NCBI GenBank assembly: GCA_002269645.1
Contig: NIVC01000540.1
Coordinates: forward strand, 248,001-312,000
Direction: 5' to 3'
Length of the DNA: 64,000 nt
Source of the DNA: Macrostomum lignano
Taxonomy: Eukaryota
Shown here piece after piece: positions 31,980-63,014 of this stretch. Each line of letters opens with the position of its first letter. The first letter of the stretch is position 1. The position numbers and the translations under genes were made by a program. The notes under the pieces are model-generated. The model worked only from the letters and a program-made list of their open reading frames with translations, was not told the origin of the DNA and did no database searches.

Positions 31980-34900
31980 GTGCTGGCGAAGATGCTGTCA
32001 CCTTCTGCGACATCGGCGGCCTCTCCTGCCTCGCCTGGTTCGACTTGGCCAGCCAATGGTCAGCGCGCCCAACTTGTTGCGCAATCAGAAATACTCCGCT
32101 TTGAGCTTCATACCGCAGGTGCTGTACGAGCAGTTCAGCGTGTTTCTCAACTTCTGCTTTCTAGTCATGGCCCTATCGCAGTTTGTGACCGCCCTGAAGA
32201 TTGGCTATCTGTACACCTACTGGGGCCCGCTCAGCTTTGTTATCTGCGTCACCGCACTGCGCGAAGCTGTTGACGATCTGCGCAGATGGCGCCGCGACCG
32301 GGAGCTCAACTCGGCTCTGTACGAGGTTGCCGCCGACGCCTCGGCCGAGTCTGCTGTCCGCCTGCTGCCCAGCCGCCTGCTGCAAGTTGGCCACGTTGTC
32401 CGGCTGGCCAAAGGCGACCGGGTGCCAGCAGATCTGGTGCTGCTGCGCGCCCCGGACAGGCGAGGCGCCTGCTACCTGCGCACAGATCAGCTGGACGGTG
32501 AAACTGACTGGAAACTGCGAGTTGCGCCTGCCGCAACTCAGCTGGTGAGAATCAAAACTGAATTTCAAATCAGAGTAAATGGGATATCGTGAAGCATCCC
32601 AGTCTCCCATTGAAATGAGTAGCAGCATCCCATTGAAGGATTAGGGGAGTAGCAGCATCCCATTGAAAGATTAGGGGAGTAGCAGCATCCCATTGAAGGA
32701 TTGTGGGAGTAGCAACATCCCATTGAAAGATTAGGGGAGTAGCAGCATCCCATTGAAGGATTGTGGGAGTAGCAGCATCCCATTGAAAGATTAGGGGAGT
32801 AGCAGCATCCCATTGAAGGATTAGGGGAGTAGCAGCATCCCATTGAAGGATTGTGGGAGTAGCAGCATCCCATTGAAAGATTAGGGGAGTAGCAGCATCC
32901 CATTGAAGGATTGTGGGAGTAGCAACATCCCATTGAAGGATTAGGGGAGTAGCAGAATCCCATTGAAGGATTAGGGGAGTAGCAGCATCCCATTGAAGGA
33001 TTGTGGGAGTAGCAGCATCCCATTGAAGGATTAGGGGAGTAGCAGCATCCCATTGAAGGATTAGGGGAGTAGCAGCATCCCATTGAAGGATTAGGGGAGT
33101 AGCAGCATCCCATTGAAGGATTAGGGGAGTAGCAGCATCCCATTAAAGGATTAGGGGAGTAGCAGCATCCCATTGAAGGATTAGGGGAGTAGCAGCATCC
33201 CATTGAAGGATTAGGGGAGTAGCAGCATCCCATTGAAGGATTAGGGGAGTAGCAGCATCCCATTGAAAGATTAGGGGAGTAGCAGCATCCCATTGAAGGA
33301 TTGTGGGCGTAGCAGCATCCCATTAAAATGAGTAGCAGCATCCCATTGAAATGAGTAGCAGCATCCCATTGAAGGATTAGGGGAGTAGCAGCATCCCATT
33401 GAAGGATTGTGGGAGTAGCAGCATCCCATTGAAAGATTAGGGGAGTAGCAGCATCCCATTGAAGGATTGTGGGAGTAGCAGCATCCCATTGAAAGATTAG
33501 GGGAGTAGCAGCATCCCATTGAAATGAGTAGCAGCATCCCATTGAAATGAGTAGCAGCATCCCATTGAAATGAGTAGCAGCATCCCATTGAAGGATTAGG
33601 GGAGTAGCAGCATCCCATTGAAAGATTAGGGGAGTAGCAGCATCCCATTGAAGGATTAGGGGAGTAGCAGCATCCCATTGAAGGATTAGGGGAGTAGCAG
33701 CATCCCATTGAAGGATTAGAGGAGTAGCAGCATCCCATTGAAGGATTAGGGGAGTAGCAGACCCATTGAAGAATTAGGAAAGTAGTAGCATCCTAATTTA
33801 ACTACTGAAGCATTATTAATGCGTACTGTACTGTCATCAAATTAATCCGTAGGCCTGGGAAGACTCTGATCTAAATGCTTCGCAAGGCTCCACCGTGTGG
33901 GCGGAACGGCCCAGCATGGACTTATCAACATTTGTCGGCACCCTGACTACCTCAACTGGTGCCCAGGTACCGCTGGGCATTGAAAACACCCTCTGGGCTG
34001 GCACCGTGCTGGCCTCTGCCGGTCCAGTCCTAGGCGTTGTTGTTTACACTGGCCGAGAGACCCGGGCCGCTATGAACAGCGCTAAGCCGCGTAGTAAACT
34101 ATCCCTAATCGATTCCGAAGTTAATTTGGCTACTAAAGTACTTGTAGTATCCGTATTGCTAGTCTCGCTGCTGCTAGTTGGACTAAAAGGCTTCGGTGGT
34201 CAATGGTACAAGTACTTTTGGCGCTTTCTACTGCTGTTCTCCTATATCATTCCGTTGGCGTGAGTAGCTCTTGTGTTCCAATTATTGTCTGACTGAGAAA
34301 GATAACTGTGATTTTGTGACAGCAGGAGAGGCTCTAGACGTGAAGTGTGTGAGATTTCAGACACAGGTGAGATAGAGTTCAGAAACGGGTGAAATGTACT
34401 TTAGACACGAGTTATTAGGTGAAATAGACTTCAGGCATGGCCTGGGAGAGATAGGCTTCAGGCATGAATCAGATAGACTTCAGGCATGGCCTGGGAGAGA
34501 GACTTCAGGCATGGCCTGGGAGAGAGACTTCAGGCATGGATCAGATAAAATACAGGCATGGCCTGGGAGAGATAGACTTCAGGCCTGGGAGAGATAGACT
34601 TCAGGCATGGCCTGGGAGATATAGGCTTCAGGCATGGATGAGATTGACTTTACGCATGGCCTAGGAGATATAGGCTTCAGGCATGGATGAGATAGACTTC
34701 AGGCATGGCCTGGGAGAGATAGGCTTCAGGCATGGATGAGATAGACTTCAGGCATGGCCTGGGAGAGATAGACTTCAGGCATGGATGAGATAGACTACGC
34801 ATGGCCTAGGAGATATAGGCTTCAGGCATGGATGAGATAGACTTCAGGCATGGCCTGGGAGAGATAGGCTTCAGGCATGGATGAGATAGACTTTACGCAT

Positions 34901-37900
34901 GGCCTAGGAGAAATAGGCTTCAGGCATGGATGAGATAGACTTCAGGCATGGCCTGGGAGAGATAGGCTTCAGGCATGGATGAGATAGACTTCAGGCATGG
35001 CCTGGGAGAGATAGGCTTCAGGCATGGATGAGATAGACTTCAGGCATGGCCTGGGAGAGATAGGCTTCAGGCATGGATGAGATAGACTACGCATGGCCTA
35101 GGAGATATAGGCTTCAGGCATGGATGAGATAGACTTCAGGCATGGCCTGGGAGAGATAGGCTTCAGGCATGGATGAGATAGACTTTACGCATGGCCTAGG
35201 AGAAATAGGCTTCAGGCATGGATGAGATAGACTTCAGGCATGGCCTGGGAGAGATAGGCTTCAGGCATGGATGAGATAGACTTCAGGCATGGCCTGGGAG
35301 AGATAGGCTTCAGGCATGGATGAGATAGACTTCAGGCATGGCCTGGGAGAGATAGGCTTCAGGCATGGATGAGATAGACTACGCATGGCCTAGGAGATAT
35401 AGGCTTCAGGCATGGATGAGATAGACTTCAGGCATGGCCTGGGAGATATAGGCTTCAGGCATGGATGAGATAGGCTTCAGGCATGGATGAGATAGACTTC
35501 AGGCATGGCCTAGGTAGGAGATATAGGCTTCAGGCATGGATGAGATAGACTTCAGGCATGGCCTGGGAGATATAGGCTTCAGACATGGATGAGATAGGCT
35601 TCAGGCATGGATGAGATAGACTTCAGGCATGGCCTGGGAGAGATAGACTTCAGGCATGGATGAGATAGACTACGCATGGCTTAGGAGATATAGGCTTCAG
35701 GCATGGATGAGATAGACTTCAGGCATGGCCTGGGAGAGATAGGCTTCAGGCATGGATGAGATAGACTTTACGCATGGCCTAGGAGAAATAGGCTTCAGGC
35801 ATGGATGAGATAGACTTCAGGCATGGCCTGGGAGAGATAGGCTTCAGGCATGGATGAGATAGACTTCAGGCATGGCCTGGGAGAGATAGGCTTCAGGCAT
35901 GGATGAGATAGACTTCAGGCATGGCCTGGGAGATATAGGCTTCAGGCATGGATGAGATAGGCTTCAGGCATGGATGAGATAGACTTTACGCATGGCCTAG
36001 GTAGGAGATATAGGCTTCAGGCATGGATGAGATAGACTTCAGGCATGGCCTGGGAGATATAGGCTTCAGGCATGGATGAGATAGGCTTCAGGCATGGATG
36101 AGATAGACTTCAGGCATGGCCTGGGAGAGATAGACTTCAGGCATGGATGAGATAGACTACGCATGGCCTAGGAGATATAGGCTTCAGGCATGGATGAGAT
36201 AGACTTCAGGCATGGCCTGGGAGAGATAGGCTTCAGGCATGGATGAGATAGGCTTCAGGCATGGATGAGATAGACTTTACGCATGGCCTAGGAGATATAG
36301 GCTTCAGGCATGGATGAGATAGACTTCAGGCATGGCCTGGGAGAGATAGGCTTCAGGCATGGATGAGATAGACTTCAGGCATGGCCTGGGAGATATAGGC
36401 TTCAGGCATGGATGAGATAGACTTCAGGCATGGCCTGGGAGATATAGGCTTCAGGCATGGATGAGATAGGCTTCAGGCATGGATGAGATAGACTTCAGGC
36501 ATGGCCTGGGAGAGATAGGCTTCAGGCATGGATGAGATAGACTTCAGGCATGGCCTGGGAGAGATAGACTTCAGGCATGGATGAGATAGACTTCAGGCAT
36601 GGCCTGGGAGAGATAGACTTCAGGCATGGATGAGATAGACTACGCCTAGGAGATATAGGCTTCAGGTATGGATGAGATAGACTTCAGGCATGGATGAGAT
36701 AGACTTTACGCATGGCCTAGGAGATATAGGCTTCAGGTATGAGTGAGGTAGACTTCAGAGATAAGTGAGATAGACTTCAGAGATAAGTGAGGTAGACTTA
36801 AGGCATGAGTGAAATAGGCTTTAGGCATAAGTAAGATAAACTTCAAGCAAGCATGAGTGAGATAAACTTCAGGCATGGGTAAGGAAGACTTCGGACATGG
36901 GGAGATAGACTTCAGTCATAAGTAAGGTAGACTTATTAGTCGCGGAATCAAACACTTAAGACAGTAGGAAAAGAATTTAGACGCATTTTGGTTTAATGAT
37001 GGCGTACTGATGCACTTTATTTCACAAATTCGCGCACATAAATTAACAAGCTTGGCACAAACTAATTGCAGGCTTCGCATGAATCTAGACATGGCCAAGA
37101 TTATCTACGCGTTTATGATTGTGCGGGACAAGTGCTTAGACGGCTGCGTTGTGCGCAACACCACCGTGCCCGAGGAGCTGGGCCGGATTAGCTATCTACT
37201 GTCGGATAAAACTGGCACCCTCACTGAGAATAATATGGTGAGTTATTTCTTTGTGAGCGTCATCACAAATACTAGATGTGACGTGCATATATTTCACTCA
37301 CAATTAATCAAGGTTGTAAAATACGGTGCGCCTACTCCTAGTAGTCTCATTTAGAATGTCTCTTTAATTTATTGTGGCAGCTGAAAAGGGACTGTCAACG
37401 TAAGCTTTCATAAAGTTGAGCTCGAGTAACCTATGTATTACAAATGATTTAAAAGGTTACGATGTTATAAGGACTCAATTTTGTTAATGTATGACATCAC
37501 ATTCGTGAGAATCCCCCGCTAACTTTGCTAAAAAGGACATAAAGGCAATCGTAAAAGTGCAATTGGGCAACTAGTGTGTGTCAAACAGTTTCGTTGGGCA
37601 ATTAGCAATAAAAAGATTATTTGTGCCAAATGTGCCAAAAAAGGAAGACAAAAATTTTTTTATCTATGCTAAAGAGCATATATTTGTGACACAACTGGCA
37701 CAATTACTGTTTTTGAAAGGACTATTATTTTCGGTCGGGTGAATTACCTGAGCTAGTAGTAGATCTACAACTACAATAATTGAATTACCTGAGCTAGTAG
37801 TAGATCTACAACTACAATAATTGAATTACCTGAGCTAGTAGTAGATCTACAACTACAATAATTGAATTACCTGAGCTAGTAGTAGATCTACAACTACAAT

Positions 37901-40900
37901 AATTGAATTACCTGAGCTAGTAGTAGATCTACAACTACAATAATTGAATTACCTGAGCTAGTAGTAGATCTACAACTACAATAATTGAATTACCTGAGCT
38001 AGTAGTAGATCTACAACTACATAAGTTGAATTACCTGAGCTAGTAGTAGATCTACAACTACAATAATTGAATTACCTGAGCTAGTAGTAGATCTACAACT
38101 ACAATAATTGAATTACCTGAGCTAGTAGTAGATCTACAACTACAATAATTGAATTACCTGAGCTAGTAGTAGATCTACAACTACAATAATTGAATTACCT
38201 GAGCTAGTAGTAGATCTACAACTACAATAATTGAATTACCTGAGCTAGTAGTAGATCTACAACTACAATAATTGAATTACCTGAGCTAGTAGTAGATCTA
38301 CAACTACAATAATTGAATTACCTGAGCTAGTAGTAGATCTACAACTACAATAGTTGAATTACCTGAGCTAGTAGTAGATCTACAACTACAATAATTGAAT
38401 TACCTGAGCTAGTAGTAGATCTACAACTACAATAGTTGAATTACCTGAGCTAGTAGTAGATCTACAACTACAATAATTGAATTACCTGAGCTAGTAGTAG
38501 ATCTACAACTACAATAATTGAATTACCTGAGCTAGTAGTAGATCTACAACTACAATAATTGAATTACCTGAGCTAGTAGTAGATCTACAACTACAATAAT
38601 TGAATTACCTTAGCTAGTAGTAGATCTACAACTACAATAATTGAATTACCTGAGCTAGTAGTAGATCTACAACTACAATAATTGAATTACCTGAGCTAGT
38701 AGTAGATCTACAACTACAATAATTGAATTACCTGAGCTAGTAGTAGATCTACAACTACAATAGTTGAATTACCTGAGCTAGTAGTAGATCTACAACTACA
38801 ATAATTGAATTACCTGAGCTAGTAGTAGATCTACAACTACAATAATTGAATTACCTGAGCTAGTAGTAGATCTACAACTACAATAATTGAATTACCTGAG
38901 CTAGTAGTAGATCTACAACTACAATAATTGAATTACCTGAGCTAGTAGTAGATCTACAACTACAATAATTGAATTACCTGAGCTAGTAATTGAACAATAA
39001 TTAAGTACAATAATTGAATTACCTGAGCTAGTAGTAGATCTACAACTACAATAATTGAATTACCTGAGCTAGTAGTAGATCTACAACTACAATAATTGAA
39101 CTACCTGAGCTAGTAGTAGATCTACAACTACAATAGTTGAACTACCTGAGCTAGTAGTAGATCTACAACTACAATAATTGAATTACCTGAGCTAGTAGTA
39201 TATCTACAACTACAATAATTGAATTACCTAAGCTAGTAACTACCTGAGCTAGTAATAGGTCTACTTAAATAACCTGAGCTAGTAAGAGCTACTTAAATGA
39301 CCTGAGCTAGTAGTAGATCTACAACTACAATAATTGAACTACCTGAGCTAGTAGTAGATCTACAACTACAATAATTGAATTACCTGAGCTAGTAGTAGAT
39401 CTACAACTACAATAATTGAATTACCTGAGCTAGTAATTGAACAATAATTAAGTACAATAATTGAATTACCTGAGCTAGTAGTAGATCTACAACTACAATA
39501 ATTGAATTACCTGAGCTAGTAGTAGATCTACAACTACAATAATTGAATTACCTGAGCTAGTAGTAGATCTACAACTACAATAATTGAACTACCTGAGCTA
39601 GTAGTAGATCTACAACTACAATAGTTGAACTACCTGAGCTAGTAGTAGATCTACAACTACAATAATTGAATTACCTGAGCTAGTAGTAGATCTACAACTA
39701 CAATAATTGAATTACGTAAGCTAGTAACTACCTGAGCTAGTAATAGGTCTACTTAAATAACCTGAGCTAGTAAGAGCTACTTAAATGACCTGAGCTAGTA
39801 GTAGATCTACAACTACAATAATTGAACTACCTGAGCTAGTAGTAGATCTACAACTACAATAATTGAATTAACTGAGCTAGTAGTAGATCTACAACTACAA
39901 TAATTGAATTACCTAAGCTAGTAACTACCTGAGCTAGTAATAGGTCTACTTAAATAACCTGAGCTAGTAAGAGCTACTTAAATGACCTGAGCTAGTAGTA
40001 GATCTACAACTACAATAATTGAATTAACTGAGCTAGTAGTAGATCTACAACTACAATAATTGAATTACCTAAGCTAGTAACTACCTGAGCTAGTAATAGG
40101 TCTACTTAAATAACCTGAGCTAGTAAGAGCTACTTAAATGACCTGAGCTAGTAGTAGATCTACAACTACAATAATTGAATTACCTGAGCTAGTAACTACC
40201 TGAGCTAGTAATAGGTCTACTTAAATGACCTGAGCTAGTAGTAGGTCTACTTAAATAACCTGAGCTAGTAAGAGCGACTTAAATGACCTGAGCTAGTAGT
40301 AGGTCTACTTAAATATCTCGAACCTGAATATTTACTTACAATTCATAGACGAAAAATACGAAATCTGATAATTCGACTTTTAATGCCATATTTTGATTTA
40401 TTTAATTCCAATTCCAACGCCAGGTGTTTAAAAAGCTGCACCTCGGCAGCCTTGTGATCACTGACGATGCGGATTCTCTAGCCGAAGTGCGCTGTCACGT
40501 GACCGCCTGGCTAAAAGCTCGAATTGGCTCCGATGAAGACAGCGACAGCGAGCGGCAGACGCAGCGAGACGGCGGCGGCGGTGGGGTGACCCGTGAAGGC
40601 GCCGACGCTGGCAGCCGGGCAGCTGAGGCGGTGCGCGCCCTGGCCCTGTGTCACAACGTCACCCCGGTGCCTGGAGAGGCCGGCGGACCGGCCGACTATC
40701 AGGCCAGCAGCCCGGACGAGGTGGCTCTGGTCGGCTGGGCTGCCTGCGCCGGCCTAGCCTTGGCCGAGCGCGACCAGGATCGGATGGTGCTGCTGGCTGG
40801 GCCTGCTGATGCCGCTGGCGTGCGGTTGGAATATCGCTTGCTGCAGGTATTGCTGGCGTTCGGCTATCTACGGTGCTTTTACTATTAGTAACATTGGGCC

Positions 40901-43900
40901 ATATGTGCAACCGACAGCTCAGCCGCAGCTATTGCGCGGCGCATCTGAAGGCTGCGTACGGCTTTTCAATCCAAGGACTGGGTGGGGGGGCGCCACACAC
41001 ACCCTCAATTACCCCAGCTAATGCTGGCACCCATTTTACAGCTGGATGAACTGAAGCAATGCAGAGTTAATTGTCTTGCTCAAGGACACAAATTGTTCCG
41101 AGTGGGGTCGGGAATCGAACCCCGACCTCTCAGTCGGGAGTCTGTCGCTCTAACCCACTAGGCTACAACCCCTTTTAAGAATCACAATACTCGTAATCAT
41201 AAAATTACAGAAAATATGAAAACACTGGTTGCCAACCTAGCATTAGGGGTCCAAATTCAGTTATGATTATGTAGTAAATGTACTTTCAACCTACACCAGA
41301 ACGCACGCCCCGGCCTATCTGTCCCCATCAGGTGTTCCCATTCAGCTCCGAGTCCAAGCGCATGGGAGTGCTGGTCCGCGACGAGCAATCAGGCGAGATT
41401 GCCTACTACACTAAAGGCGCCGATTCCGTGCTGGCCCCCCTAGTGCAGCCATTGGACTGGATAGACGAAGAAGTAGCCAATTTGTCCAGGGAGGGCCTGC
41501 GCACTCTGCTAGTTGCTAGGCGATGCCTGACGCCGGAATTCTATCGCGATTGGAGCGCTCGCTACGAACAGGCCGGCCTAGCTGTGCGCGATCGGGAACA
41601 GCGGCTTGAACAGGTTCGACAGCAGCTGGATTCCGGCCTGGAATTGCTGTGCGTCACCGGAGTAGAGGATCGGCTGGCTGACGGCGTGCGCCGCTGCTTG
41701 GAGACTCTGCGCGATGCCGGCGTTCGAGTCTGGATGCTGACTGGCGATCGGCTGGAGACCGCCTGCTGTATTGCCAGGTTTGTTTACTCCTGAGCACATG
41801 CGAGCGCCCCAATACTTTACGCAGGCCCGCACTCATACACACGCTTGCTCACACAGGGTGTACACAGCGGCTTTGACTTTCTAATCGTCAGGCATGTACA
41901 CTCTGTGTCTATCAGACCCAACAGGCCTATGGCCAGATAACCGACAGCTCGTACGGCTGTTCAGTCCAAGGACTGGGGGGGGGGGGTCGACACCCACAGA
42001 CTCAATTACCCCAGCTAATTCTGGCACCCATTTTACAGCTGGGTGAACTCAAGCAATGCAGAATTAAGTGTCTCACACATAAGGACACTAACTGTTTCGA
42101 GTGGGTCGAAAATCGAACCCCCGACCTTTCAGTCGTGAATCCGTCGCTCTAGCCACTAGGCTACAACCCCTTGTAAGCATTCATATATACACAGCAAAAT
42201 TTAAAATTCTCAGGTCCGCTCGTTTGGTTGAACGCGGCGCCGGTCTACACGTTTTCCAGCCGGCCCCAGCCGCTATTGGAGATCCGTCAGTTCCAGGCGG
42301 CTCTTCTTCCTCTTCCTCGGCGGCGGCGGCGGCTGCTGCTTCTGGGATTTCCGGTGCCAGCGGGATAGCTGGCAGCGATGGAGCCGACCTACTCGATAGG
42401 GAGCTCCGTGCTGCGGCTCGGCGCGTTGAAGCGGGACAGGTGCGTGCCCGGAATTCAATCCCTCAACAACTAATATCCCTCAGAAAGACAGGAGATCCCA
42501 CAGAAAGACAGGAGATCCATCAGAAAGACAGGAGATTCTCCAGAAAGATAACAGATCCCTCAGAAAGACAGGAGATCCCACAGAAAGACAGGAGATCCAT
42601 CAGAAAGACAGGAGATTCTCCAGAAAGATAACAGATCCCTCAGAAAGACAGGAGATCCCACAGAAAGACAGGAGATCCATCAGAAAGACAGGAGATTCTC
42701 CAGAGAGATAACAGATCCCTCAGAAAGACAGGAGATCCCACAGAAAGACAGGAGATCCATCAGAAAGACAGGAGATTCTCCAGAAAGATAACAGATCCCT
42801 CAGAAAGACAGGAGATCCCACAGAAAGACAGGAGATCCATCAGAAAGACAGGAGATTCTCAAGAAAGATAACAGATCCCTCAGAAAGACAGGAGATCCTA
42901 ATGAAGGAGAGGAGGTCCCTCAAAAAGACAGGAGATCCCTCAGAAGACAGGAGATCCCTCAGAAAGGCAGGAGATCCTCCAGAAAGACAACAGATCCTCC
43001 AGAAAGACAACAGATCCCTCAGAAAGGCAGATCCCTCAGAAATCCCTCAGAAAGGCAGGAGAAACAGAAGACAGAATAGACTTCAGACGAATTTTTACCA
43101 TAAATTTATTCGCAACTCGCAGGCGCTGGCCCTGACCGGAGCGGCCCTGGAGGCGGCGGTTGCCCAAGACGAGCGCCTGTTTGCTCGAATCGCCTGCCGC
43201 GCTCCGGCCGTTGTTGTTAGCCGGTGTTCGCCAACGCAGAAGGCGGCCGTTGTCCGGCTGCTGCAGCGCCACACTGGCCGACGCTGCGCCGCTATTGGCG
43301 ACGGCGGTAACGACGTGGCGATGATTCAGGTTGGATTGTCCAAAATACCATTGCACGTTGTTTGAAACCTATTTTTTGGTTTCTAACCAAATAGGCACTT
43401 AAATTAATGAAAAATTAATCTAAGCCAGGTATGCAGGCGGGTATTCAAGCCAGGTAGACAGGCGGGTATCTAAGCCAGGTAGATAGGCGGGTACCTAAGC
43501 CAGGTAGACAGGCGGGTATCTAAGCCAGGTAGACAGGCGGGTATCTAAGCCAGGTAGACAGGCGGGTACCTAAGCCAGGTAGACAGGCGGGTATCTAAGC
43601 CAGGTAGACAGGCGGGTATCTAAGCCAGGTAGACAGGCGGGTATCTAAGCCAGGTAGACAGGCGGGTATCTAAGCCGGGTAGACAGGCGGGTATTTAAGC
43701 CAGGTAGACATAAGACAGGAGGGAGGGTAGCCAGTCAGCTCATCGGATAGGCAGACGGATAGAAGAACCCGTAGCTAGCAAGAAGCCAACAGAGGGATGA
43801 AGTATCAATGTTATCATGATTTACATTGCAGGCCGCCGATTGTGGCCTAGGAATTGCCGGTCGCGAGGGCCGACAGGCCGCTCTAGCAGCCGACGTGAGC

Positions 43901-46900
43901 GTGTCGAGATTCGAGCAGTCAGCCCGCCTGCTGCTGGTGCACGGCCGTCGGTGCTATCGCAATTCGGCCCTGCTAGCCCAGTTTGTAATCCATCGCGGCC
44001 TGGCTATCTCAGCTATGCAGGCGGTGTTCTCAGCGGTGTTTTACTATGCCGCCGTCAGTCTGTTCCCCGGCGCTCTCATGGTCGGCTATGCCACCGTGTT
44101 CACCAATTTCCCCGTATTCTCGCTGGTGCTGGATCGGGACGTGCCGGCTACCACTGCGGAGAAGTTTCCCGAGCTGTATCGCGAATTGCTCAAGGTTTGT
44201 GTGGAAGGGAATAAAATCACTGAGTTGGGTACAGGTTAGGTCAAGAGTTTACAGTATAGCGATTGACCGAGTTTACAGTAGCGATAGACCGAGTTTACAG
44301 TAGCGATAGACCGAGTTTACAGTAGCGATAGACCGAGTTTACAGTAGCGATAGACCGAGTTTACAGTAGCGATAGACCGAGTTTACAGTACAGCGATTGA
44401 CCGAGTTTACAGTACAGCGATTGACCGAGTTTACAGTATAGCGATTGACCGAGTTTACAGTAGCGATAGACCGAGTTTACAGTAGCGATAGACCGAGTTT
44501 ACAGTACAGCGATTGACCGAGTTTACAGTACAGCGATTGACCGAGTTTACAGTACAGCGATTGACCGAGTTTACAGTACAGCGATAGACCGAGTTTACAG
44601 TACAGCGATTGACCGAGTTTACAGTACAGCGATTGACCGAGTTTACAGTAGCTTAACTACCGATTATTACCCTTTAGTTGTGTAAGGAATCAAGTCTGAG
44701 TTGCTCCCAAATCCCAATAAATCCCTGTTCAGGGCCGCGAGCTCTCAGCCAAGACCCTGTGGGTTTGGACCGCCGTGTCGCTCTATCAAGGCGGAGTCAT
44801 CATGTACGGCTCTCTGTGGCTATTTGAGACATCATTTCTAAGAATTGTTAGCATAGCATTCACTGCTATTGTGCTCAACGAACTGCTCATGGTGGCCTGC
44901 ACTGTGCGCACCTGGCATTGGCTGATGTCAGTAGCGGAGCTGCTCAGTCTGCTCTGCTACCTGCTGGCTGTTGTTGTGCTGCCTAATTATTTTGGTTTGT
45001 TTTTGCTTAATTTTCTCCGTATATCCTATGAAAAATTGTTGAGGAGCCTGTTGCAGATTAGTGAGGAGTCTGCAGATTAGTGAGCAGACGGTTGCAGATT
45101 AGTGAGCAGACGGTTGCAGATTAGTGAAGAGACTGTTGCAGATTAGTGAGGAGTCTGCAGATTAGTGAGCAGACTGTTGCAGATTAGTAGGGAGACTGTT
45201 GCAGATTAGTGAAGAGACTGTTGCAGATTAGTGAAGAGACTGTTGCAGATTAGTAAGGAGCCTGTTGCAGATTAGTGAAGAGACTGTTGCAGATTAGTAA
45301 GGAGCCTGTTGCAGATTAGTGAGCAGACTGCTGCAGATTAGTAGGGAGACTGTTGCAGATTAGTGAAGAGACTGTTGCAGATTAGTGAAGAGACTGTTGC
45401 AGATTAGTAAGGAGCCTGTTGCAGATTAGTGAAGAGACTGTTGCAGATTAGTGAGGAGTCTGCAGATTAGTGAGCAGACTGTTGCAGATTAGTAGGGAGA
45501 CTGTTGCAGATTAGTAGGGAGACTGTTGCAGATTAGTAGGGAGACTGTTGCAGATTAGTAAGGAGCCTGTTGCAGATTAGTGAAGAGACTGTTGCAGATT
45601 AGTGAGGAGACTGTTGCAGATTAGTAGGGAGACTGTTGCAGATTAGTAGGGAGACTGTTGCAGATTAGTGAAGAGACTGTTGCAGATTAGTGAGGAGACT
45701 GTTGCAGATTAGTAGGGAGACTGTTGCAGATTAGTGAAGAGACTGTTGCAGATTAGTGAAGAGACTGTTGCAGATTAGTGAAGAGACTGTTGCAGATTAG
45801 TGAAGAGACTGTTGCAGATTAGTGAAGAGACTGTTGCAGATTAGTGAAGAGACTGTTGCTGATAGATTAGTGAGAAAACTGTTGCAGATTAAGACAGACT
45901 ACCTTATGTAAATAATGAACTCCGTTGCAGACCCCGGCTTCATCTTGACGCTCAGCTTCCTATGGAAGGTGTCGGTGATCACGGCGATCAGCGCCATACC
46001 ATTCTTCGTCATCAAATTTGTGCGCTATTATATGCGACCGCCGATAACGCGGAAGCTGCAGTCGTAAGTTATTTAGCGATGCGGGTGTATCGTTGTCTTT
46101 TTAGTTTGGAATTTTCAATTTTCAAGTCATTGCAAACAACTCTAGAGACGACTGTTGAGTCACGAGTGCATCACGTCAATTGCAGAATCGTAAAAGAGCC
46201 GCGAAAAAGTCATCCAATAGTCGTTGTGTTAGCGCTTAAGTTTCTGCAAACTGAAGTGGACTAAATAGAATTGTAATAAATGCGAAATGCGATTCTAATA
46301 AATTCATAAAATCAAAGCTTCGAGCTGTGCCATGCATTTTTATGATTTTTAGGTACAGGAAATGTACGTAGAATAAAAATTGTCATAAAATCCGACTTTT
46401 CTAAACGAAAAGCTTTATGAATATCAATAGAGCTATAAGAAAGGCACAACATATCAGAAGATGATCATTGGGCCTGCCTCCAATCTAAAGCAATAACAAT
46501 TTTTGTGCTTAAATAATAAAAGCTTCCTATCTCCGTAGTGTATTTTTCAGCGAAAACCAGCCTCATAAACATTTTCTAACGATGGTTTCCCTTCCTACTC
46601 AAGTCCTTGGCTCAGATTTTAGATCATAGATTTATTGAAAATCTTAAATTTTATTGACTAAGTGCGCTTGTTTCTACTAAAAAGTCAGTAGTCAGTATAG
46701 AGAGTTTAAACATTTATTTGATTTTGTCAACTTTTCAGTGGCGCCGACTCGCCCGCCTGGTTCGAGCAGGCCGGGCGGTTGCGGCGGCCTATCGAGGCCC
46801 GGCCTCTCCTGTCCTCTATGGTGGACATCAGCGGCGGCGGCGGTGGTGGCGCCGACTTTGAACTGCAGCCGCCTGACTCGCCAGCCGGCCCGGGGACGCC

Positions 46901-47496: not shown

Positions 47497-47862
47497 TTGA
47501 TGTGGCGCCACTCCCTTCTCCATTGGCTGTTGATGTGGCGCCACTCCCTTCTTCAGTGGCTGTTGATGTGGCGCCACTCCCTTCTTCAGTGGCTGTTGAT
47601 GCGGCGTCACTCCCTTCTCCAATGGCTGTTGATGTGGCGCCACTCCCTTTTTCAGTGGCTGTTAATGTGGCGCCACTCCCTTCTCCATTGGCTGTTAATG
47701 TGGCGTCACTCCCTTCAGTAGCTGTTGATGTGGCGCCACTCCCTTCTTCAGTGGCTGTTGATGTGGCGCCACTCCCTTCTCCATTGGCTGTTGATGTGGC
47801 GCCACTCCCTTCACCATTGGCTGTTGATGTGGCGCCACTCCCTTCACCATTGGCTGTTGATG
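47497..47862 (+). repeat. 33-bp minisatellite GGCTGTTGATGTGGCGCCACTCCCTTCTCCATT between ATP9 and RPL10
   Basis: About 11 units; explains the 11-aa periodic ORFs in several frames. Confidence 0.95.
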
Positions 47863-47977
47863 TATTTGCTGTATACTCGTAGTGGATTAGCATATACAGT
47901 TTATAGATGCCCCAGCTCTAGTTGCTGTCTTAACTAGCCGTTGCTTAACCACTTCTTTGCATGCTTCATCGCTCAGC

Positions 47978-49629
47978 ATGGGTCGCCGCCCCGCCCGCTG
48001 CTACCGGTACTGCAAGAACAAGCCGTACCCCAAGTCGCGCTTCTGCCGCGGCGTCCCCGATCCCAAGATTCGAATCTACGATCTGGGCAAGAAGAAGGCC
48101 CGAGTGGACGACTTCCCGCAGTGCGTCCACATGATCTCGGACGAGTACGAGCAGCTGTCCGCCGAGGCTCTGGAAGCCGCCCGTATCGCCGCCAACAAGT
48201 ACCTGGTGAAGAGCTGCGGCAAGGACTCCTTCCATCTGCGCGTCCGGCTGCACCCGTTCCACGTGACCCGCATCAACAAGATGTTGTCCTGCGCCGGCGC
48301 CGATCGCCTCCAGACTGGCATGCGCGGCGCCTTCGGCAAGCCGAACGGCCTCGTTGCCCGCGTGAACATCGGCCAGGTTTGACATTTTGTTGCAGTGGGT
48401 GAATGCGCCTGTAAACTGCCCTGGTTATCCCAGCATAACTGCCTTGATAGTCTTATAATTCCTTATAACTGTCCTTAGAATCCCCTCATAACTACCCTTA
48501 GACTCCCCTCACAACTACCCTTAGAATCCCCTCATAACTACCCTTAGACTCCCCTCATAACTACCCTTAGAATCCCCTCATAACTACCCTTAGACTCCCC
48601 TCATAACTACCCTTAAAATCCTCTCATAACTACCCTTAGACTCCCCTCATAACTACCCTTAGAATCCCCTCATAACTACCCTTAAAATCCTCTCATAACT
48701 GTCCTTAGAATCCCCTCACAACTACCCTTAGAATCCCCTCATAACTGTCCTTAGAATCCCCTCACAACTACCCTTAGAATCCCCTCATAACTGTCCTTAG
48801 AATCCCCTCACAACTACCCTTAGAATCCCCTCATAACTACCCTTAAAATCCTCTCATAACTACCCTTAGACTCCCCTCATAACTACCCTTAAAATCCTCT
48901 CATAACTGTCCTTAGAATCCCCTCACAACTACCCTTAGAATCCCCTCATAACTACCCTTAAAATCCTCTCATAACTACCCTTAGACTCCCCTCATAACTA
49001 CCCTTAGACTCCCCTCATAACTACCCTTAAAATCCTCTCATAACTACCCTTAGACTCCCCTCATAACTACCCTTAGACTCCCCTCATAACTACCCTTAAA
49101 ATCCTCTCATAACTATCCTTAGAATCCCCTCATAACTACCCTTAAAATCCTCTCATAACTACCCTTAAAATCCTCTCATAACTGTCCTTAGAATCCCCTC
49201 ATAACTACCCTTAAAATCCTCTCATAACTACCCTTGGAATCCTCTCATAACTACCCTTAAAATCCTCTCATAACTACCCTTGGAATCCTCTCATAAGTAC
49301 CTATAGAATTTGCCATAGCAACTGTAAGGCTCATAGCTGGCAACCCCGGCGAACATGTTGGCCAGGTGATCATGTCGGTGCGCGGCCGGGAAAACAACGT
49401 GAACTCCATGGTGGAGGCGTTCCGCCGATCCAAGATGAAGTTCCCCGGCAGGCAGAAGATCGCCGTCAGCCGTCGTTGGGGCTTCACTAAGTGGGACCGA
49501 GCCGACTACGAGCAGATGCGGGCCGAGGGCCGCCTGCAGCCTGACGGCGTCGGCTGCAAGTACCTGCCGGAGCACGGGCCGCTGGACAACTGGAAGCAGG
49601 TGCAGGCCGCTATGCGCATGGCCAGCTAA
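47978..49629 (+). CDS. RPL10: 60S ribosomal protein L10 (uL16); exons 47978-48376 and 49366-49629; 220 aa
   Basis: [37 protein letters not shown]...[19 protein letters not shown]...ARVNIGQ|VIMSVR...KFPGRQKI; phase-0 GT-AG intron. Confidence 0.98.
48455..49300 (+). repeat. 23-bp minisatellite CTACCCTTAGAATCCCCTCATAA in the RPL10 intron
   Basis: About 36 tandem units, period 23. Confidence 0.95.
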
Positions 49630-50108: not shown

Positions 50109-50687
50109 ATGCAAGCTATCAAGTGTGTTGTAGTGGGCGACGGAGCTGTGGGAAAAACCTGCCTGCTCATCTCCTACACGACCAACGCCTTCCCCGGCGA
50201 GTACATCCCGACCGTGTTTGACAACTACTCAGCCAATGTGATGGTCGACGGCAAGCCCATCAACCTGGGCCTGTGGGACACGGCTGGCCAGGAGGACTAC
50301 GACAGGCTGAGGCCGCTGAGCTACCCGCAGACTGATGTGTTTCTGGTCTGCTTCTCCCTCATCAGCCCGGCCAGTTACGAGAACGTGCGGGCCAAGTGGT
50401 ACCCGGAGGTGAGCCACCACTGTCCCAACACGCCCATCATCCTGGTCGGCACCAAACTGGACCTGCGCGATGACAAAGACACAATTGAGAAACTGCGCGA
50501 GAAGAAGCTGGCCCCCATCACCCACCTGCAGGGCATGACAATGGCCAAGGAGATTAACGCGGTGAAGTACCTGGAGTGCTCAGCCCTGACTCAGAAGGGA
50601 CTGAAGAACGTGTTTGACGAGTCCATTCGGGCCGTGCTGTGTCCGAGGCCGAGGCCGTCCAAGCGAAACAAGTGCGACTTGCTGTAA
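50109..50687 (+). CDS. RAC1: Rac1 small GTPase, intronless CDS, 192 aa, CAAX CDLL
   Basis: [72 protein letters not shown], essentially canonical Rac; basic tail and CAAX present. Confidence 0.97.
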
Positions 50688-53233: not shown

Positions 53234-53827
53234 CTACAGCAGGCCGCAGGAGAGTTGCTTCTTTTTCTTCTTGCCATCGTCCTGCAGCGCGTGGAAGTGT
53301 GCCCGAACAGCCTCGGTGAAGACTGCGTCCAAATTCTTGCTCTTCTTAGCCGAACACTCCACGAAACGGTCGGCATTGATCTCTTTGGCCAGCTTTTCGC
53401 CTTCAGCTGTGGAAATCGGGTCCTTTACCGCTTCTCCGCCGACTTGATCGTCCCGGGTATCGGTCTTGGTTGCAACCAGAACTACCGGAGAATGGCTGAA
53501 CCCGCCGAAGTGACGCAACTCGGGCACCCACTTGGCTTTTACGTTTTGATAGCTATCTCTGTTATCCACTGAATAGCACAGCAAGAATACGTTGGTGTCT
53601 TTGTAACCCAATGGCCGCAGTCTGTCGTAGCTCTCCTGCCCGGCCGTGTCGTATATGGACAGCCTTACTGCCTTTCCGTCAACTGAAATGTAATGCGAGC
53701 TATCGTCGGCCACGGTTGGCGCGTACTCTTCCGGAAATGTGTTTAATGTGTAGACCAGGACCATGCTGGTCTTGCCAACTGTGCCGTCGCCAACCAGCAC
53801 TAACTTTATCGTGGTTATGTTCGACAT
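53234..53827 (-). CDS. Divergent Rho-family GTPase (copy A), 197 aa, CAAX CGLL
   Basis: GDGTVGKT, switch I YAPTVADDSS, DTAGQESYDRLRPLGY, TKTD, CSAK, short Rho insert, KKKKK-QLSCGLL-stop. ATG at 53827; the longer ORF upstream starts at a TTG. Confidence 0.92.
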   Translation of the reverse strand: MSNITTIKLVLVGDGTVGKTSMVLVYTLNTFPEEYAPTVADDSSHYISVDGKAVRLSIYDTAGQESYDRLRPLGYKDTNVFLLCYSVDNRDSYQNVKAKWVPELRHFGGFSHSPVVLVATKTDTRDDQVGGEAVKDPISTAEGEKLAKEINADRFVECSAKKSKNLDAVFTEAVRAHFHALQDDGKKKKKQLSCGLL

Positions 53828-54254
53828 GTTTTGAGGCACTAGCGTGCTGATACACTCGAATGTGTTCTTATCGGCGTTCAAAATACTGATACGAGCTATG
53901 CTATTACAAACTTATCATAGATACGAGTATTTATAATGCTAGACGCACCCATTTACCTGCACTAGCACAGCTTCGTACCCCTTGCGTGCCCCCTCTGTGT
54001 TAATTCGTCTAACAGCAAACTATGAAAAAAGCAAAAGGGATGGGTAGGGCGGAAAAATACCCCGCCACCACCCAACACTACCCCCGAGCACAATGCCGAG
54101 GGTTTTAAATACAAAGCTCAAACCTAAGAAGACGACTTGTCTCAGTTCTTCAAAGCTTCTGTCTGTTGTGGCAGTGGGGGTAGCAGGCGTGTAAGGTAGT
54201 TGGCGTGAGAGGTTATCAGAGACTACCGATAAACGACCTGTTACAGGTTTAAAA

Positions 54255-54672
54255 CTATGGCTGGCTATTCGAGACACCATTTCTAAGAACAGCATAGTGT
54301 TCATTGCGATTGTGCTCAACGAACTGCTCATGGTGGCCTGCACTGTGCGCACCTGGCATTGGCTGATGTCTGTAGCGGAGCTGCTCAGTCTGCTCTGCTA
54401 CCTGCTGGCTGTTGTTGTGCTGCCTAATTATTTTGGTTTGTTTGCGCTTAATTTGTCTGTGTATTCCTGGAGATTGTTGCAGATTATCGAGGAGACTGTT
54501 GCAGATTAGTGAGTAGCCTGTTGCAGATTAGCGAGGAGACTTTTGCAGATTAGTGAGCAGCCTGTTGCAGATTAGTGAGGAGACTAGGGATTAGTGAGAA
54601 GATTGTTGCAGATTATTGAGGAGACTAGTGATTAGTGAGAAGATTGTTGCAGATTAGTGAGGAGACTGTTAC
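54255..54672 (+). pseudogene. Duplicated fragment of the ATP9 exon 44733-44994 (3' part) plus adjacent intron and minisatellite
   Basis: Near identity to about 44810-45130 (GTGCTCAACGAACTGCTCATGGTGGCC..CCTAATTATTTTGG) with a 5-nt deletion and no flanking ATP9 exons. About 54945-55195 also matches ATP9 last-intron sequence at about 46312-46555. Confidence 0.88.
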
Positions 54673-56436: not shown

Positions 56437-57111
<675 letters not shown>

Positions 57112-57946: not shown

Positions 57947-58627
57947 TTACATGAGTAGAGGGGCATAAAAGTTGCAAACTGGAGTATCATACATGAGCAA
58001 TCGTAATCGTGCTAAGAATTGGTCGTAGGAGGCGAACAGCAGGCCGCAGGAGAGTTGCTTCTTTTTCTTCTTGCCGTCGTCCTGCAGCGCGTGGTAGTGT
58101 GCCCGTACAGCCTCGTTGAAGACGGCGTCCAAGTTTTTCCTCATCTTAGCTGAACACTCGACAAAACGGTCGGCTTTGATTTCTTTGGCCAGTTGTTTGC
58201 CTTCAGCTGTGGAAATCGGGTCCTTTACCGCTTCTCCGCCGACTTGATCGTCCCGGGTATCGGTCTTGGTTGCAACGAGAACTACCGGAGAACGGCTGAA
58301 CCCGCCGAAGTGACGCAACTCCGGCACCCACTTGGCTTTTACGTTTTGACAGCTATCTCTGTTATCCACTGAATAGCACAGCAAGAATACGTTGGTGTCT
58401 TTGTAACCCAATGGCCGCAGTCTGTCGTAGCTCTCCTGCCCGGCCGTGTCGTATATGGACAGCCTTACTGCCTTTCCGTCAACTGAAATGTAATGCGAGC
58501 TATCGTCGGCCACGGTTGGCGTGTACTCTTCCGGAAATTTGTTCGATGTGTAGACCAGGACCATGCTGGTCTTGCCAACTGTGCCGTCACCAACCAGCAC
58601 TAACTTTATCGTGACTGTGTTCGACAT
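57947..58627 (-). CDS. Divergent Rho-family GTPase (copy B) with stop-codon loss; 226 aa, CAAX buried
   Basis: Paralog of 53234-53827 with 14 amino-acid differences. The TAG after CGLL is replaced by TTC, adding 29 residues (FASYDQFLARLR..YAPLLM). May be a pseudogene. Confidence 0.8.
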   Translation of the reverse strand: MSNTVTIKLVLVGDGTVGKTSMVLVYTSNKFPEEYTPTVADDSSHYISVDGKAVRLSIYDTAGQESYDRLRPLGYKDTNVFLLCYSVDNRDSCQNVKAKWVPELRHFGGFSRSPVVLVATKTDTRDDQVGGEAVKDPISTAEGKQLAKEIKADRFVECSAKMRKNLDAVFNEAVRAHYHALQDDGKKKKKQLSCGLLFASYDQFLARLRLLMYDTPVCNFYAPLLM

Positions 58628-60564: not shown

Positions 60565-61191
60565 TTACAGCAGAGTGCAAGGTCTCGTCTTATTATTTTT
60601 CTTCTTCTTGCCGCAGATGCCTTTAGCCATTAGGTGGGCTCGCACAGCCTCCTCCATAACCTGCTGCAGGCCGTGCCCAGTCAGTGCTGAACACTCTACG
60701 TACGTTTTGGCGCCAATTTCTGTCGCCATTGCTCGTCCCTCGCTGCTGTCAACCATGGTGATATTTTGCCGTTTCAGATAGTCGATGGCAGCCGAGTCAG
60801 TACGAAGATCGGCTTTGGTGGCCACTAAGATTATGGGCACGCTTGGGCCATAGTGCCCCAGCTCTGGGCGCCACTTATCGCGCACATTCTTGAAGCTGTT
60901 CCGGCCGTCAACTGAAAAGCACACTACGAACACGTCGGTGTTGGGATAGCTGAGTGGTCGCAGTCTGTCGTAGTCCTCCTGGCCTGCCGTGTCCCACAGC
61001 TGCAGTCGCACTGGCCGGCTGTCTACTGTGACGTCGTACGAGAAGTTGTCAACAATCGTTGGCACATAAGTCGTCGGGAAGCCTTTCTTCATGTAGACGC
61101 TTAGCATGCAGGTCTTGCCAACGGAGCCATCGCCAACTAGAACGACTTTGAGCGTATCTACTCTGTTGCTGCTGTTAGCGTTATTAGACAT
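60565..61191 (-). CDS. Divergent Rac/Rho-family GTPase, intronless, 208 aa, CAAX CTLL
   Basis: GDGSVGKT, switch [37 protein letters not shown], polybasic KKKK tail. Confidence 0.93.
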   Translation of the reverse strand: MSNNANSSNRVDTLKVVLVGDGSVGKTCMLSVYMKKGFPTTYVPTIVDNFSYDVTVDSRPVRLQLWDTAGQEDYDRLRPLSYPNTDVFVVCFSVDGRNSFKNVRDKWRPELGHYGPSVPIILVATKADLRTDSAAIDYLKRQNITMVDSSEGRAMATEIGAKTYVECSALTGHGLQQVMEEAVRAHLMAKGICGKKKKNNKTRPCTLL

Positions 61192-62432: not shown

Positions 62433-63014
62433 TTAGAGAACGCTGCAGCTAGGGTTTGGCTTCCTGTGCGGCTTTGTTGGCATCATCACTGCTCGAATGG
62501 CCTCATCGAACACAGTTTTAAGTCCCATCTGCATGCGAGCTGAACACTCCAGGTACTTAACCGCGTTGATCTCCTTGGCTAGTGCCAGGCCCTGCGCCTG
62601 AGAAATCGGAGCCTGATTCTTGCTCTTTAGTTTATCAATGGTATCCTTTTCCTCCCGAAGGTCCATCTTGGTTCCAACTAGCACGATTGGCTTGTTAGGA
62701 CAGTGGTGGCTCACCTCCCGGTACCATTTGGCTCGGACATTCTCATAGCTGGCTGGGCTTACTAAGGAGAAGCAGACCAGGAACACGTCCGTATGCGGGT
62801 AGCTCAGCGGCCTCAGCCTGTCGTAGTCATCCTGGCCTGCCGTGTCCCACAGGCCTAAGTTGATGGGCTTGTTATCGACCATGACGTTTGCTGAGAAGCT
62901 GTCGAACACTGTTGGAATGTACTCGCTTGGAAAGGTGTTGGTTGTGTAAGAAATCAACAGGCAGGTCTTGCCGACACCTCCGTCGCCGACAACAACGCAC
63001 TTGATTGACTGCAT
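62433..63014 (-). CDS. Rac-like GTPase, intronless, 193 aa, CAAX CSVL
   Basis: [64 protein letters not shown]; clearly in the Rac subfamily. Confidence 0.95.

Follow-up and report, generated by a model that had tools for sequence, protein, structure and literature searches.

RhoX of the flatworm Macrostomum lignano is an extra Rho/Rac-type gene that is transcribed and selectively maintained; it is a lineage-specific paralogue in an expanded family and not a new kind of system. The encoded protein is probably a functional Rho GTPase of this lineage, namely a prenylated switch that cycles conventionally and whose effector face is re-specified, and the reading we favour is that it may use altered or novel effectors. 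The gene lies on contig NIVC01000540.1 (GCA_002269645.1), in the 64,000-nucleotide stretch that was analysed (the window), to which the coordinates below refer. Copy A is a called gene in the NCBI annotation, where the GenBank entry reads "hypothetical protein BOX15_Mlig000443" (PAA78473.1 and PAA63374.1).

Motifs and fold of copy A

The features of copy A, each assigned on the evidence given in brackets, are:

53234..53827, minus strand: RhoX copy A, complete intronless coding sequence, 197 amino acids plus TAG stop
53768..53791, minus strand: G1/P-loop GDGTVGKT, then Ser for Rac1 Cys18 (translation, Rac1 alignment)
53696..53725, minus strand: switch I/effector loop YAPTVADDSS, Rac1 residues 32-41 (codons, Rac1 alignment)
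53591..53650, minus strand: G3 motif DTAGQE and switch II, DTAGQESYDRLRPLGYKDTN (translation, Rac1 alignment)
53459..53470, minus strand: G4 motif TKTD (translation; K121 and D123 are invariant columns)
53420..53458, minus strand: Rho insert region TRDDQVGGEAVKD, shortened (HMMER alignment, AF2 model)
53345..53356, minus strand: G5 motif CSAK (translation)
53237..53272, minus strand: polybasic KKKKK, QLS and CAAX box CGLL (translation; C194 is an invariant column)
53902..53935, minus strand: putative core promoter of copy A (TATAAA and gene-model boundary)

Translation places the ATG at 53827-53825 and the TAG stop at 53236-53234 on the minus strand. The protein matches Pfam Ras (PF00071) with E = 3.8e-49 (166.8 bits; cutoff 21.6). 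Its best PDB sequence match is to Rac1 structures (E = 1.8e-51, about 48% identity), and the top PDB sequence matches are all Rac, ROP or Cdc42. Similarly, the AF2 model (pLDDT 87.8, pTM 0.87) finds Rac1, RACB and RhoA as its best Foldseek matches, with TM about 0.9 and rmsd of 1.2-1.4 Å. Pfam, the Rac1 structures and Foldseek thus agree with an earlier sequence-only reading that this is a genuine Rho-family GTPase, and its statement that the nucleotide-binding motifs, polybasic tail and CAAX box are intact also holds, as copy A carries the full set. All five Ras-like G-box motifs are found (GDGTVGKT, T35, DTAGQE, TKTD and CSAK), and Gly12, Ala59 and Gln61 are kept, without the hydrolysis-abolishing changes of the Rnd, RhoH or RhoBTB type. 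Since G12, T17, T35, D57, Q61, TKxD and SAK are all present, RhoX would most likely cycle between GDP and GTP as a classical Rho protein and not be permanently GTP-bound like Rnd and RhoH. At the C-terminus the polybasic stretch reads GKKKKK and the stop codon directly follows CGLL. Under the CAAX rule a terminal Leu leads to geranylgeranylation, and the terminal Leu of CGLL predicts this modification for RhoX; in combination with the five lysines, targeting to the plasma membrane is predicted, and handling by RhoGDI would be implied.

Human Rac1 (e.g. 1MH1, 3TH5) shares the G-boxes, Gln61 and the switch II core with RhoX and likewise has a polybasic tail and a geranylgeranyl-type CAAX box. 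Switch II, the face for GEFs, GAPs and GDI, appears mostly conserved: in the Rac1 alignment Gln61, Tyr64, Arg66, Leu67 and Leu70 are kept, while D63S, S71G, P73K and Q74D are altered. The residue directly preceding the G3/switch II stretch is changed as well (W56Y). Trp56 is a determinant of Rac-specific GEF recognition, and RhoX has Tyr in its place (IYDTAGQ). Unlike Rac1, RhoX further carries C18S and H104F, a strand beta2 that reads SHYIS for SANVM, and a 2-residue insertion after alpha3 (HFGGFSHSP versus HH--CPNTP in Rac1). The Rho insert, a feature of the Rho family, is present, though short. The interval from TKxD to P-I-S/T comprises 13 residues in copy A versus 17 in Rac1, and the resulting 4-residue gap in the HMMER alignment matches the earlier estimate of an insert about 4 residues shorter. 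In the AF2 model the region forms only a 4-residue helix (H123-126) followed by coil (DSSP; pLDDT 79-82). Other Rho proteins also have shortened inserts (PMC8305917). Upstream of the reading frame, a TATAAA at 53935-53930 precedes the start of the transcript-based gene model (5' end at 53902) by 28-33 nt and may serve as the core promoter of copy A.

The effector face

Relative to human Rac1, switch I of copy A carries I33A, F37A, N39D and Y40S (HMMER alignment, offset +3) and retains Y32, P34, T35, V36 and D38. The loop YAPTVADDSS is identical in all three A-type copies, and the canonical effector loop that characterises the Rac subfamily is lacking. Codons and alignment agree with the central observation of the sequence-only reading, namely that both effector-loop positions (F37A and Y40S) are changed in a protein with intact catalytic machinery and membrane anchor. 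The combination is rare but not unique: of the 133 Rho domains in the best 150 representatives, 7 are altered at both positions 37 and 40, including that of another M. lignano protein, A0A1I8GCE2 (YVPTETDDCF). In many natural Rho proteins position 40 is H, Q, S, C, R or F, with His in dipteran RhoL (TVFDNHA). The exact loop TVADDSS did not occur outside RhoX among the divergent Rho paralogues compared. A further M. lignano gene (L007:6091-6687) reads SIPTVFDSHE in switch I, and A0A1I8GCE2 has DVSC for DTAG, whereas RhoX has the complete catalytic set. Switch I is also naturally divergent in Dictyostelium RacJ (PMC8305917). RacJ and the other M. lignano Rho genes are, like RhoX, lineage-specific with a non-canonical switch I and inserts that are sometimes short.

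The laboratory mutants F37A and Y40C of Rac1/Cdc42 alter the same two positions as RhoX; Ala37 is identical, while position 40 is Ser and not Cys. The effects of F37A and Y40C in Rac/Cdc42 are established (reportedly in Lamarche et al. 1996, Cell 87:519). The laboratory proteins carry single changes, whereas RhoX has both together with about 100 other differences and Ser at position 40, so that the mutant phenotypes are not simply transferable. Further, F37A alone does not eliminate PAK binding by Rac1 and D38 is retained in RhoX, so that some CRIB binding could persist. The effector face appears remodelled by F37A, N39D, Y40S, the SANVM to SHYIS change in beta2, W56Y and the shortened, non-helical insert. 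Binding of CRIB/PAK-type and other canonical Rac effectors would most likely be weak or absent, with a different set of partners in their stead, and RhoX would then be a paralogue that has undergone sub- or neo-functionalisation. The sequence would predict that the protein binds GTP, is prenylated and has lost effectors. A bolder version of this proposal, which we hold only tentatively and think is unlikely, describes RhoX as a natural "separation-of-function" Rac that the ordinary Rac regulators would load and switch off at the plasma membrane and that would either engage flatworm-specific effectors or tune the output of Rac1, forming a lineage-specific branch with the other aberrant M. lignano Rho paralogues.

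Gene cluster and relatives

RhoX is one of several intronless Rac-like genes in a tandem cluster of 13 kb, which consists of Rac1, RhoX-A, a truncated Rac1, RhoX-B, a paralogue with F37V and a further Rac-like gene. Apart from RhoX-A, its members are:

50109..50687, plus strand: canonical intronless Rac1, 192 amino acids, adjacent to RhoX-A within the duplicated unit
56506..56924, plus strand: truncated Rac1 duplicate, first ~140 codons, G5 and CAAX lost
57947..58627, minus strand: RhoX copy B, stop TAG changed to TTC, 29-amino-acid extension, gene call absent
60565..61191, minus strand: paralogue P0014 (Mlig020450), 208 amino acids, YVPTIVDNFS
62433..63014, minus strand: Rac-like paralogue P0130, 193 amino acids

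Local duplication gave rise to the cluster, and gene conversion contributes to its evolution. Contamination or a viral origin of these intronless genes was considered and rejected, as on three M. lignano contigs the cluster is found in synteny with RPL10 and a phospholipid-flippase gene. The canonical Rac1, 2.5 kb from RhoX in the duplicated unit, is only about 47% identical to it; comparison of this Rac1 among the three loci gives 10-12 synonymous differences and none that are non-synonymous. The truncated Rac1 duplicate is probably a pseudogene. P0014 carries V36I, F37V and Y40F with a full-length insert and the CAAX box CTLL, and at the syntenic locus L002 its counterpart carries a frameshift. 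RhoX itself is present in seven copies (three A-type, four B-type) in the three syntenic loci, each with an open frame.

Copy B encodes a protein 93% identical to copy A over the 197 shared codons (58037-58627) and has YTPTVADDSS in switch I, with Thr and not Ala at position 33. The earlier remark that the loop is shared by copy B is therefore accurate for TVADDSS, but the stop codon and the terminal CAAX box are lost. The frame runs 29 residues past TTC (FASYDQ...APLLM) to a stop at 57947-57949, and as a result of the stop loss, which is common to 4/4 B-type copies across the three loci, CGLL is internal. Lacking both a terminal CAAX box and a gene model, copy B is probably degenerating, or at best a non-prenylated variant. 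Among the B-type copies dN/dS is 0.5-0.6. The RhoX locus displays, next to one another, tandem duplication and gene conversion as well as truncation and the loss of a stop codon.

The search for a RhoX orthologue outside M. lignano found none above 56% identity, and when 1.84 billion representatives were searched exhaustively with HMMER nothing exceeded about 53%, the top E-values belonging to multi-Rho-domain or merged gene models. The highest-scoring named homologues are arthropod RhoL and centipede RhoL-like proteins, at 50-56% identity. RhoL is a distinct family (Murphy & Montell 1996, PMC2120826), and its published descriptions are, as far as found, confined to arthropods. RhoX might accordingly be read as the flatworm counterpart of RhoL, which lies at roughly the same distance from Rac, Rho and Cdc42, and as working like it. 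Both share the short insert, the SAKK of G5 (ECSAKK), LLCYS(V/I)DNR and E(L/I)RHF, and Tyr40 is missing in dipteran RhoL as well, but RhoL retains Phe37 and Asn39. Further, RhoX alone among the tested proteins scores higher on the RhoL HMM (235 bits) than on the Rac HMM (217 bits). However, the 235 bits are no better than the scores of human RhoA (241) and Cdc42 (246) on the same RhoL HMM; membership by HMM score was rejected because the preference is small and below the level reached by these unrelated proteins. A neighbour-joining tree with 200 bootstraps joins RhoX to P0014 (36% support), both on long branches outside the Rac1 clade and with no support above 36%, and a position of RhoX beside RhoL receives 10%. 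The genomic context also indicates local duplication from Rac-like genes, and we consider it unlikely that RhoX is the counterpart of RhoL with a RhoL-like role.

Transcription, selective constraint and function

RhoX is transcribed at a low level and body-wide. The Mlig_3_7 gene models were built from RNA-seq and transcript assemblies (PMC5730564), and Table S8 of Brand et al. 2020 (PMC7336406) lists Mlig000443.g1, g4 and g5, each of 669 nt. The three are classed as "Non-Specific" there, with 41-110 reads in every body fragment, including the head-only fragment. Reads are not unambiguously assignable among the near-identical copies. Counts were found only in PMC7336406; Mlig000443 was not found in the full texts searched or in the supplements of PMC5730564 and PMC5816591. 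The RhoX 90% cluster has no Logan/SRA-derived members that would give an independent transcript assembly.

These data bear on the proposal, made by the sequence-only reading, that RhoX acts as a sink. A membrane-anchored, effector-silent protein could compete for RhoGDI, GAPs or GEFs and thereby tune Rac signalling, and Rho proteins are known to compete for a limited pool of RhoGDI. The conservation of switch II, Tyr32, Thr35, Gln61, the polybasic tail and the CAAX box alongside a changed effector loop would suit such a role, as would the co-location of a canonical Rac1 within the RhoX duplicated unit. However, the intact Thr17 and nucleotide-binding residues predict that a GEF would be released normally after loading, with no trap of the dominant-negative type, which disfavours a GEF sink in particular. 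Contacts with regulators are also altered by W56Y, H104F and several substitutions in switch II, and an expression of tens of reads argues against a stoichiometric sink. We regard this role as unsupported and quite doubtful.

Selective constraint was estimated as pairwise dN/dS (NG86) among the M. lignano copies, from small numbers of substitutions (10-33 per pair). Pairs of A copies gave 0.12-0.29 and A-B pairs 0.30-0.39, with a deficit of non-synonymous changes in binomial tests (p = 0.0005-0.04), but the pairwise values are neither independent nor clean because the copies exchange sequence by gene conversion, as seen in the mosaic pattern of shared sites. In the A clade the variable codons comprise 10 synonymous and 7 non-synonymous, where 77% non-synonymous would be expected (p = 0.0016). 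Further, dS in the coding sequence (0.05-0.09) exceeds the intergenic divergence between loci (1-1.5%), so that much of the variation among copies was imported from paralogues. In view of the mosaic sites and the elevated dS, the main weight is placed not on the pairwise dN/dS of the A copies but on the contrasts of A with B and of coding sequence with flanks. Between A and B the coding sequence is 93% identical, the alignable 3' flank 76%, and the upstream region is without similarity.

The sequence-only reading had itself named an unexpressed gene with dN/dS near 1 as grounds for refutation. Transcript-based models and published read counts speak against the former, and an overall dN/dS of 0.12-0.39 with a significant non-synonymous deficit against the latter. 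Much the same evidence makes it very unlikely that RhoX-A is a young duplicate drifting toward a pseudogene, its altered loop being the product of relaxed constraint. The cluster does contain decay products (the truncated Rac1, the stop-loss B copies with their higher dN/dS and the frameshifted P0014), and an orthologue outside M. lignano is not known. However, the A copies are all intact with invariant G-boxes and switch I, their coding sequence is far better kept than the flanks, transcription is documented, and a divergence of ~50% from any Rac with all catalytic residues kept is unlike neutral decay. Finally, the suggestion that RhoX is a decoy substrate for Rho-modifying bacterial toxins is highly implausible: the toxin-targeted Tyr32, Thr35 and Gln61 are retained, but every Rho protein keeps these residues and catalysis alone explains them, the Rac1 N39 equivalent of the Asn that is ADP-ribosylated in RhoA is changed to Asp, and expression in this free-living flatworm is low and not tissue-specific, with no ecological or expression link to infection.

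The RhoX locus offers a compact example of the expansion of the Rho family, and the deposits labelled "hypothetical protein, partial" can be re-annotated as a complete 197-amino-acid Rho-family GTPase starting with MSNITT. M. lignano is a tractable regeneration model in which transgenesis and RNAi are established. If RhoX cycles normally and ignores CRIB effectors, it would be an evolved counterpart of the F37A/Y40C laboratory mutants, would show which other surface changes go along with losing or replacing effector binding, and might lead to new Rho effectors.

An intact Rho GTPase with a doubly changed effector loop

RhoX-A, the Rho-family GTPase gene under study, is an uninterrupted ORF (window 53234-53827, (-)) of 197 residues with its first ATG at 53827 and a C-terminal end of DDGKKKKKQLSCGLL followed by a stop; no further in-frame ATG lies upstream as far as the annotated transcript 5' end. 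Pfam places the protein in the Ras family (E = 3.8e-49). In a sequence search of solved structures, Rac1, Rac2 and Rac3 take all the top places and plant ROPs and Cdc42 come next (best E = 1.8e-51). Read from codons 53725-53696 (-) and aligned to Rac1 with HMMER (numbering offset +3), switch I is YAPTVADDSS and carries I33A, F37A, N39D and Y40S, with Y32, P34, T35, V36 and D38 as in Rac1. Codons and alignment directly confirm the sequence-only reading that both effector-loop positions, 37 and 40, are altered in a protein with intact nucleotide-binding motifs and tail: the P-loop GDGTVGKT, DTAGQE including Gln61, TKTD, CSAK, the polybasic run and the CAAX box are all present. The Rho insert had also rightly been judged about 4 residues shorter, the interval from TKxD to P-I-S/T being 13 residues vs 17 in Rac1; a 2-residue insertion relative to Rac1 follows helix alpha3. 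With a 51-sequence alignment as input, AlphaFold2 gives a confident model (pLDDT 87.8, pTM 0.87), which matches Rac1 and other Rho folds at TM ~0.9 and rmsd 1.2-1.4 A; the insert region of the model is a mere four-residue helix, then coil.

The combined change of F37 and Y40 is rare. Phe37 does not vary among the 120 best word-indexed homologues, save in the M. lignano proteins (Ala in RhoX, Val in the cluster paralogue P0014), whereas position 40 varies naturally to H (dipteran RhoL and others), Q, S, C, R and F. An exhaustive HMMER search gave 133 Rho domains in its best 150 representatives: Phe37 is present in 118, Tyr or Phe occupies position 40 in 116, and seven, belonging to four proteins, differ at both positions. 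Among the four is UniRef A0A1I8GCE2 (P0132, M. lignano), with YVPTETDDCF/L; its gene model holds four Rho domains and reads DVSC where DTAG is expected. The exact loop turned up in M. lignano alone in these searches, and doubly changed domains do occur elsewhere. Outside M. lignano, the best identity to RhoX in the homologue and exhaustive HMMER searches is about 56%.

RhoX is already deposited in GenBank as an uncharacterised protein. The exact RhoX-A protein is found, as a 222-aa 5'-open model, on NIVC01000540.1 of GCA_002269645.1, the Mlig_3_7 assembly of this free-living flatworm, and near-identical entries are named "hypothetical protein BOX15_Mlig000443g5/g2, partial" (PAA78473.1 and PAA63374.1). 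The Mlig_3_7 gene models were built from RNA-seq and transcript assemblies (PMC5730564). Table S8 of Brand et al. 2020 (PMC7336406) lists Mlig000443.g1, g4 and g5 (669 nt each), all three classed as "Non-Specific", with reads in four nested fragments, A (head only), B, C and D (whole worm), of 82/58/45/73, 95/110/87/88 and 99/71/68/41, respectively. These counts point to weak expression throughout the body, anterior somatic tissue included. A TATAAA box (53935-53930) is located 28-33 nt 5' of the gene model start, and an ATTAAA 134 nt downstream of the stop.

The duplicated Rho cluster and its surroundings

A tblastn search of the window with the RhoX-A protein recovered six Rho genes inside 13 kb, all intronless:

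50109-50687, (+): canonical Rac1 gene
53234-53827, (-): RhoX-A
56506-56924 (homology; frame to 57111), (+): truncated Rac1 duplicate
58037-58627 (57947-58627 with read-through extension), (-): RhoX-B, the nearby paralogue of RhoX-A
60565-61191, (-): paralogue P0014 (Mlig020450), switch I YVPTIVDNFS (V36I, F37V, Y40F), full-length insert
62433-63014, (-): Rac-like gene P0130

At another M. lignano locus, the Rac1 gene Mlig028896 has one intron of ~90 nt and adjoins a further aberrant Rho gene (L007:6091-6687, 198 aa) with switch I SIPTVFDSHE, in which Tyr32 is lost.

Self-comparison of the window shows that the Rac1 + RhoX unit was segmentally duplicated, with 90% identity in the Rac1 5' part, 93% in the RhoX CDS and just 76% in the alignable 3' flank; upstream of the RhoX start, it detected no similarity between the duplicates. 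The match of the truncated Rac1 duplicate stops after ~140 codons (at 56924), where the frame enters unrelated sequence.

Apart from the Rho genes, the window holds ordinary animal sequence:

9698-15742, (+): uninterrupted Helitron-type ORF, 2014 aa, with Helitron_like_N, DUF6570 and PIF1-helicase domains; apparently an intact Helitron-type transposase/helicase
about 32056-44239, (+): multi-exon P4-type phospholipid flippase gene
47957-48382, (+): RPL10
45040-45891, 47497-47863, 48461-49309, 54469-54670, also about 27.7-29.4 kb and 32.5-33.7 kb: minisatellite arrays (periods 22, 33 and 23 nt)

The 22-nt unit of 45040-45891 is found again at 54469-54670, upstream of RhoX-A, and spurious long ORFs arise from the arrays, some rich in Ser/Leu and some of another repeat type.

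The neopolyploid assembly holds three versions of this locus: the window (L001), L002 (NIVC01000686) and L003 (NIVC01001849). They are syntenic, since all three are flanked by RPL10 and the flippase gene. The Rac1 duplicate is truncated identically in all three, and a spliced gene model in L003 covers two such copies. The P0014 copy in L002 (L002:3381-3979) is frameshifted, the called product there being only 88 aa.

Constraint, gene conversion and the divergence of copy B

Seven RhoX copies are spread over the three loci, and all seven are open. Nei-Gojobori dN/dS is 0.12-0.29 within the A copies and 0.30-0.39 in A-B comparisons, where the floor would be about 0.5 had B been neutral since duplication. 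The non-synonymous deficit is significant: the A and B copies of the window differ by 15 non-synonymous and 14 synonymous changes (77% non-synonymous expected; p = 0.0025), and the variable codons of the A clade are 10 synonymous vs 7 non-synonymous (p = 0.0016).

These pairwise dN/dS values are not independent, because gene conversion among paralogues adds to the differences between copies, as follows from clear mosaicism in the variable-site table and from a coding dS above intergenic divergence. L3_B1, one of two B-type copies in L003, is chimeric: its promoter and 5' half are A-type, its 3' half B-type. L2_A, the A copy of L002, has a B-type tract at codons 144-149. In L2_B (L002:5911-6501), eight nucleotide changes within 16 nt at codons 42-47 turn TVADDSSHYIS into TVADTSSYHVS (switch I and strand beta2); this resembles either a complex mutation or a tract converted from an unsampled paralogue. 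Between loci, synonymous divergence is 0.05-0.065 for RhoX-A and 0.08-0.09 for Rac1, which has no non-synonymous differences; this coding dS (0.05-0.09) is several-fold above the intergenic divergence of just 1-1.5% (L001-L003, 10670-13218) and suggests ectopic gene conversion into coding regions. The sequence-only reading was to be abandoned for a gene that is unexpressed with dN/dS near 1; neither holds for RhoX, which has reads in all fragments and ratios of 0.12-0.39, read with the gene-conversion caveat.

RhoX-B and RhoX-A are not equivalent. Copy B had been said to keep the same loop; it does keep TVADDSS, but position 33 is Thr rather than Ala, and its stop codon is lost (TAG to TTC). 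The 29 extra residues (FASYDQFLARLRLLMYDTPVCNFYAPLLM) bury the CAAX box, so that CGLL is internal and no longer C-terminal. The loss is inherited rather than a sequencing error, because all four B-type copies, spread over the three loci, share it (window 57947-58627 (-), L002:5911-6501, L003:3-572 and L003:5029-5619). The annotation of these loci calls no gene model on any B copy, and dN/dS among them, 0.5-0.6, rests on very few substitutions.

Family placement and proposed function

RhoX is assigned to the Rho family with its subfamily left uncertain; the cluster context makes a Rac-derived origin most likely. Like RhoL, it has a short insert, ECSAKK, LLCYSxDNR and E(L/I)RHF, and its score on a RhoL HMM exceeds that on a Rac HMM by 18 bits. 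However, RhoA and Cdc42 match RhoX on the RhoL HMM. In a neighbour-joining tree RhoX pairs with P0014 (36% bootstrap), both beside arthropod RhoL with 10% support. Orthology to RhoL is a less likely possibility.

RhoX is a real, intact, duplicated and transcribed gene under constraint that models as a Rac-like fold, and it is functional by available criteria. Its catalytic set is complete (G12, T17, T35, D57, A59, Q61, TKxD, SAK), unlike the Rnd-, RhoH- and RhoBTB-type atypical proteins, and points to a classical, GAP-sensitive GDP/GTP cycle. CGLL and the polybasic stretch predict geranylgeranylation, plasma-membrane association and RhoGDI handling. Switch II retains the DH-GEF/GAP/GDI-contact residues Y64, R66, L67, L70 and Y72, and the changes concentrate on the effector face (F37A, N39D, Y40S, strand beta2, W56Y and the insert). 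Lamarche and colleagues reportedly found in 1996 that the single mutants F37A and Y40C of Rac/Cdc42 each remove distinct effector outputs. By analogy, RhoX would most likely have dropped canonical CRIB/PAK-type and lamellipodial effectors and signal via other partners.

Competition of RhoX for RhoGDI or GAPs is possible, although its low expression counts against it. A GEF trap, one form of the sink first proposed, is improbable, as RhoX is expected to bind nucleotide normally. A role as decoy for Rho-modifying toxins has no support. Divergent effector loops are known to occur naturally in expanded Rho families, e.g. Dictyostelium RacJ (PMC8305917). The M. lignano Rho family appears large, divergent and uncatalogued. 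The most fitting description of RhoX is that of a lineage-specific member, divergent in its effector loop, of an expanded flatworm Rho family.
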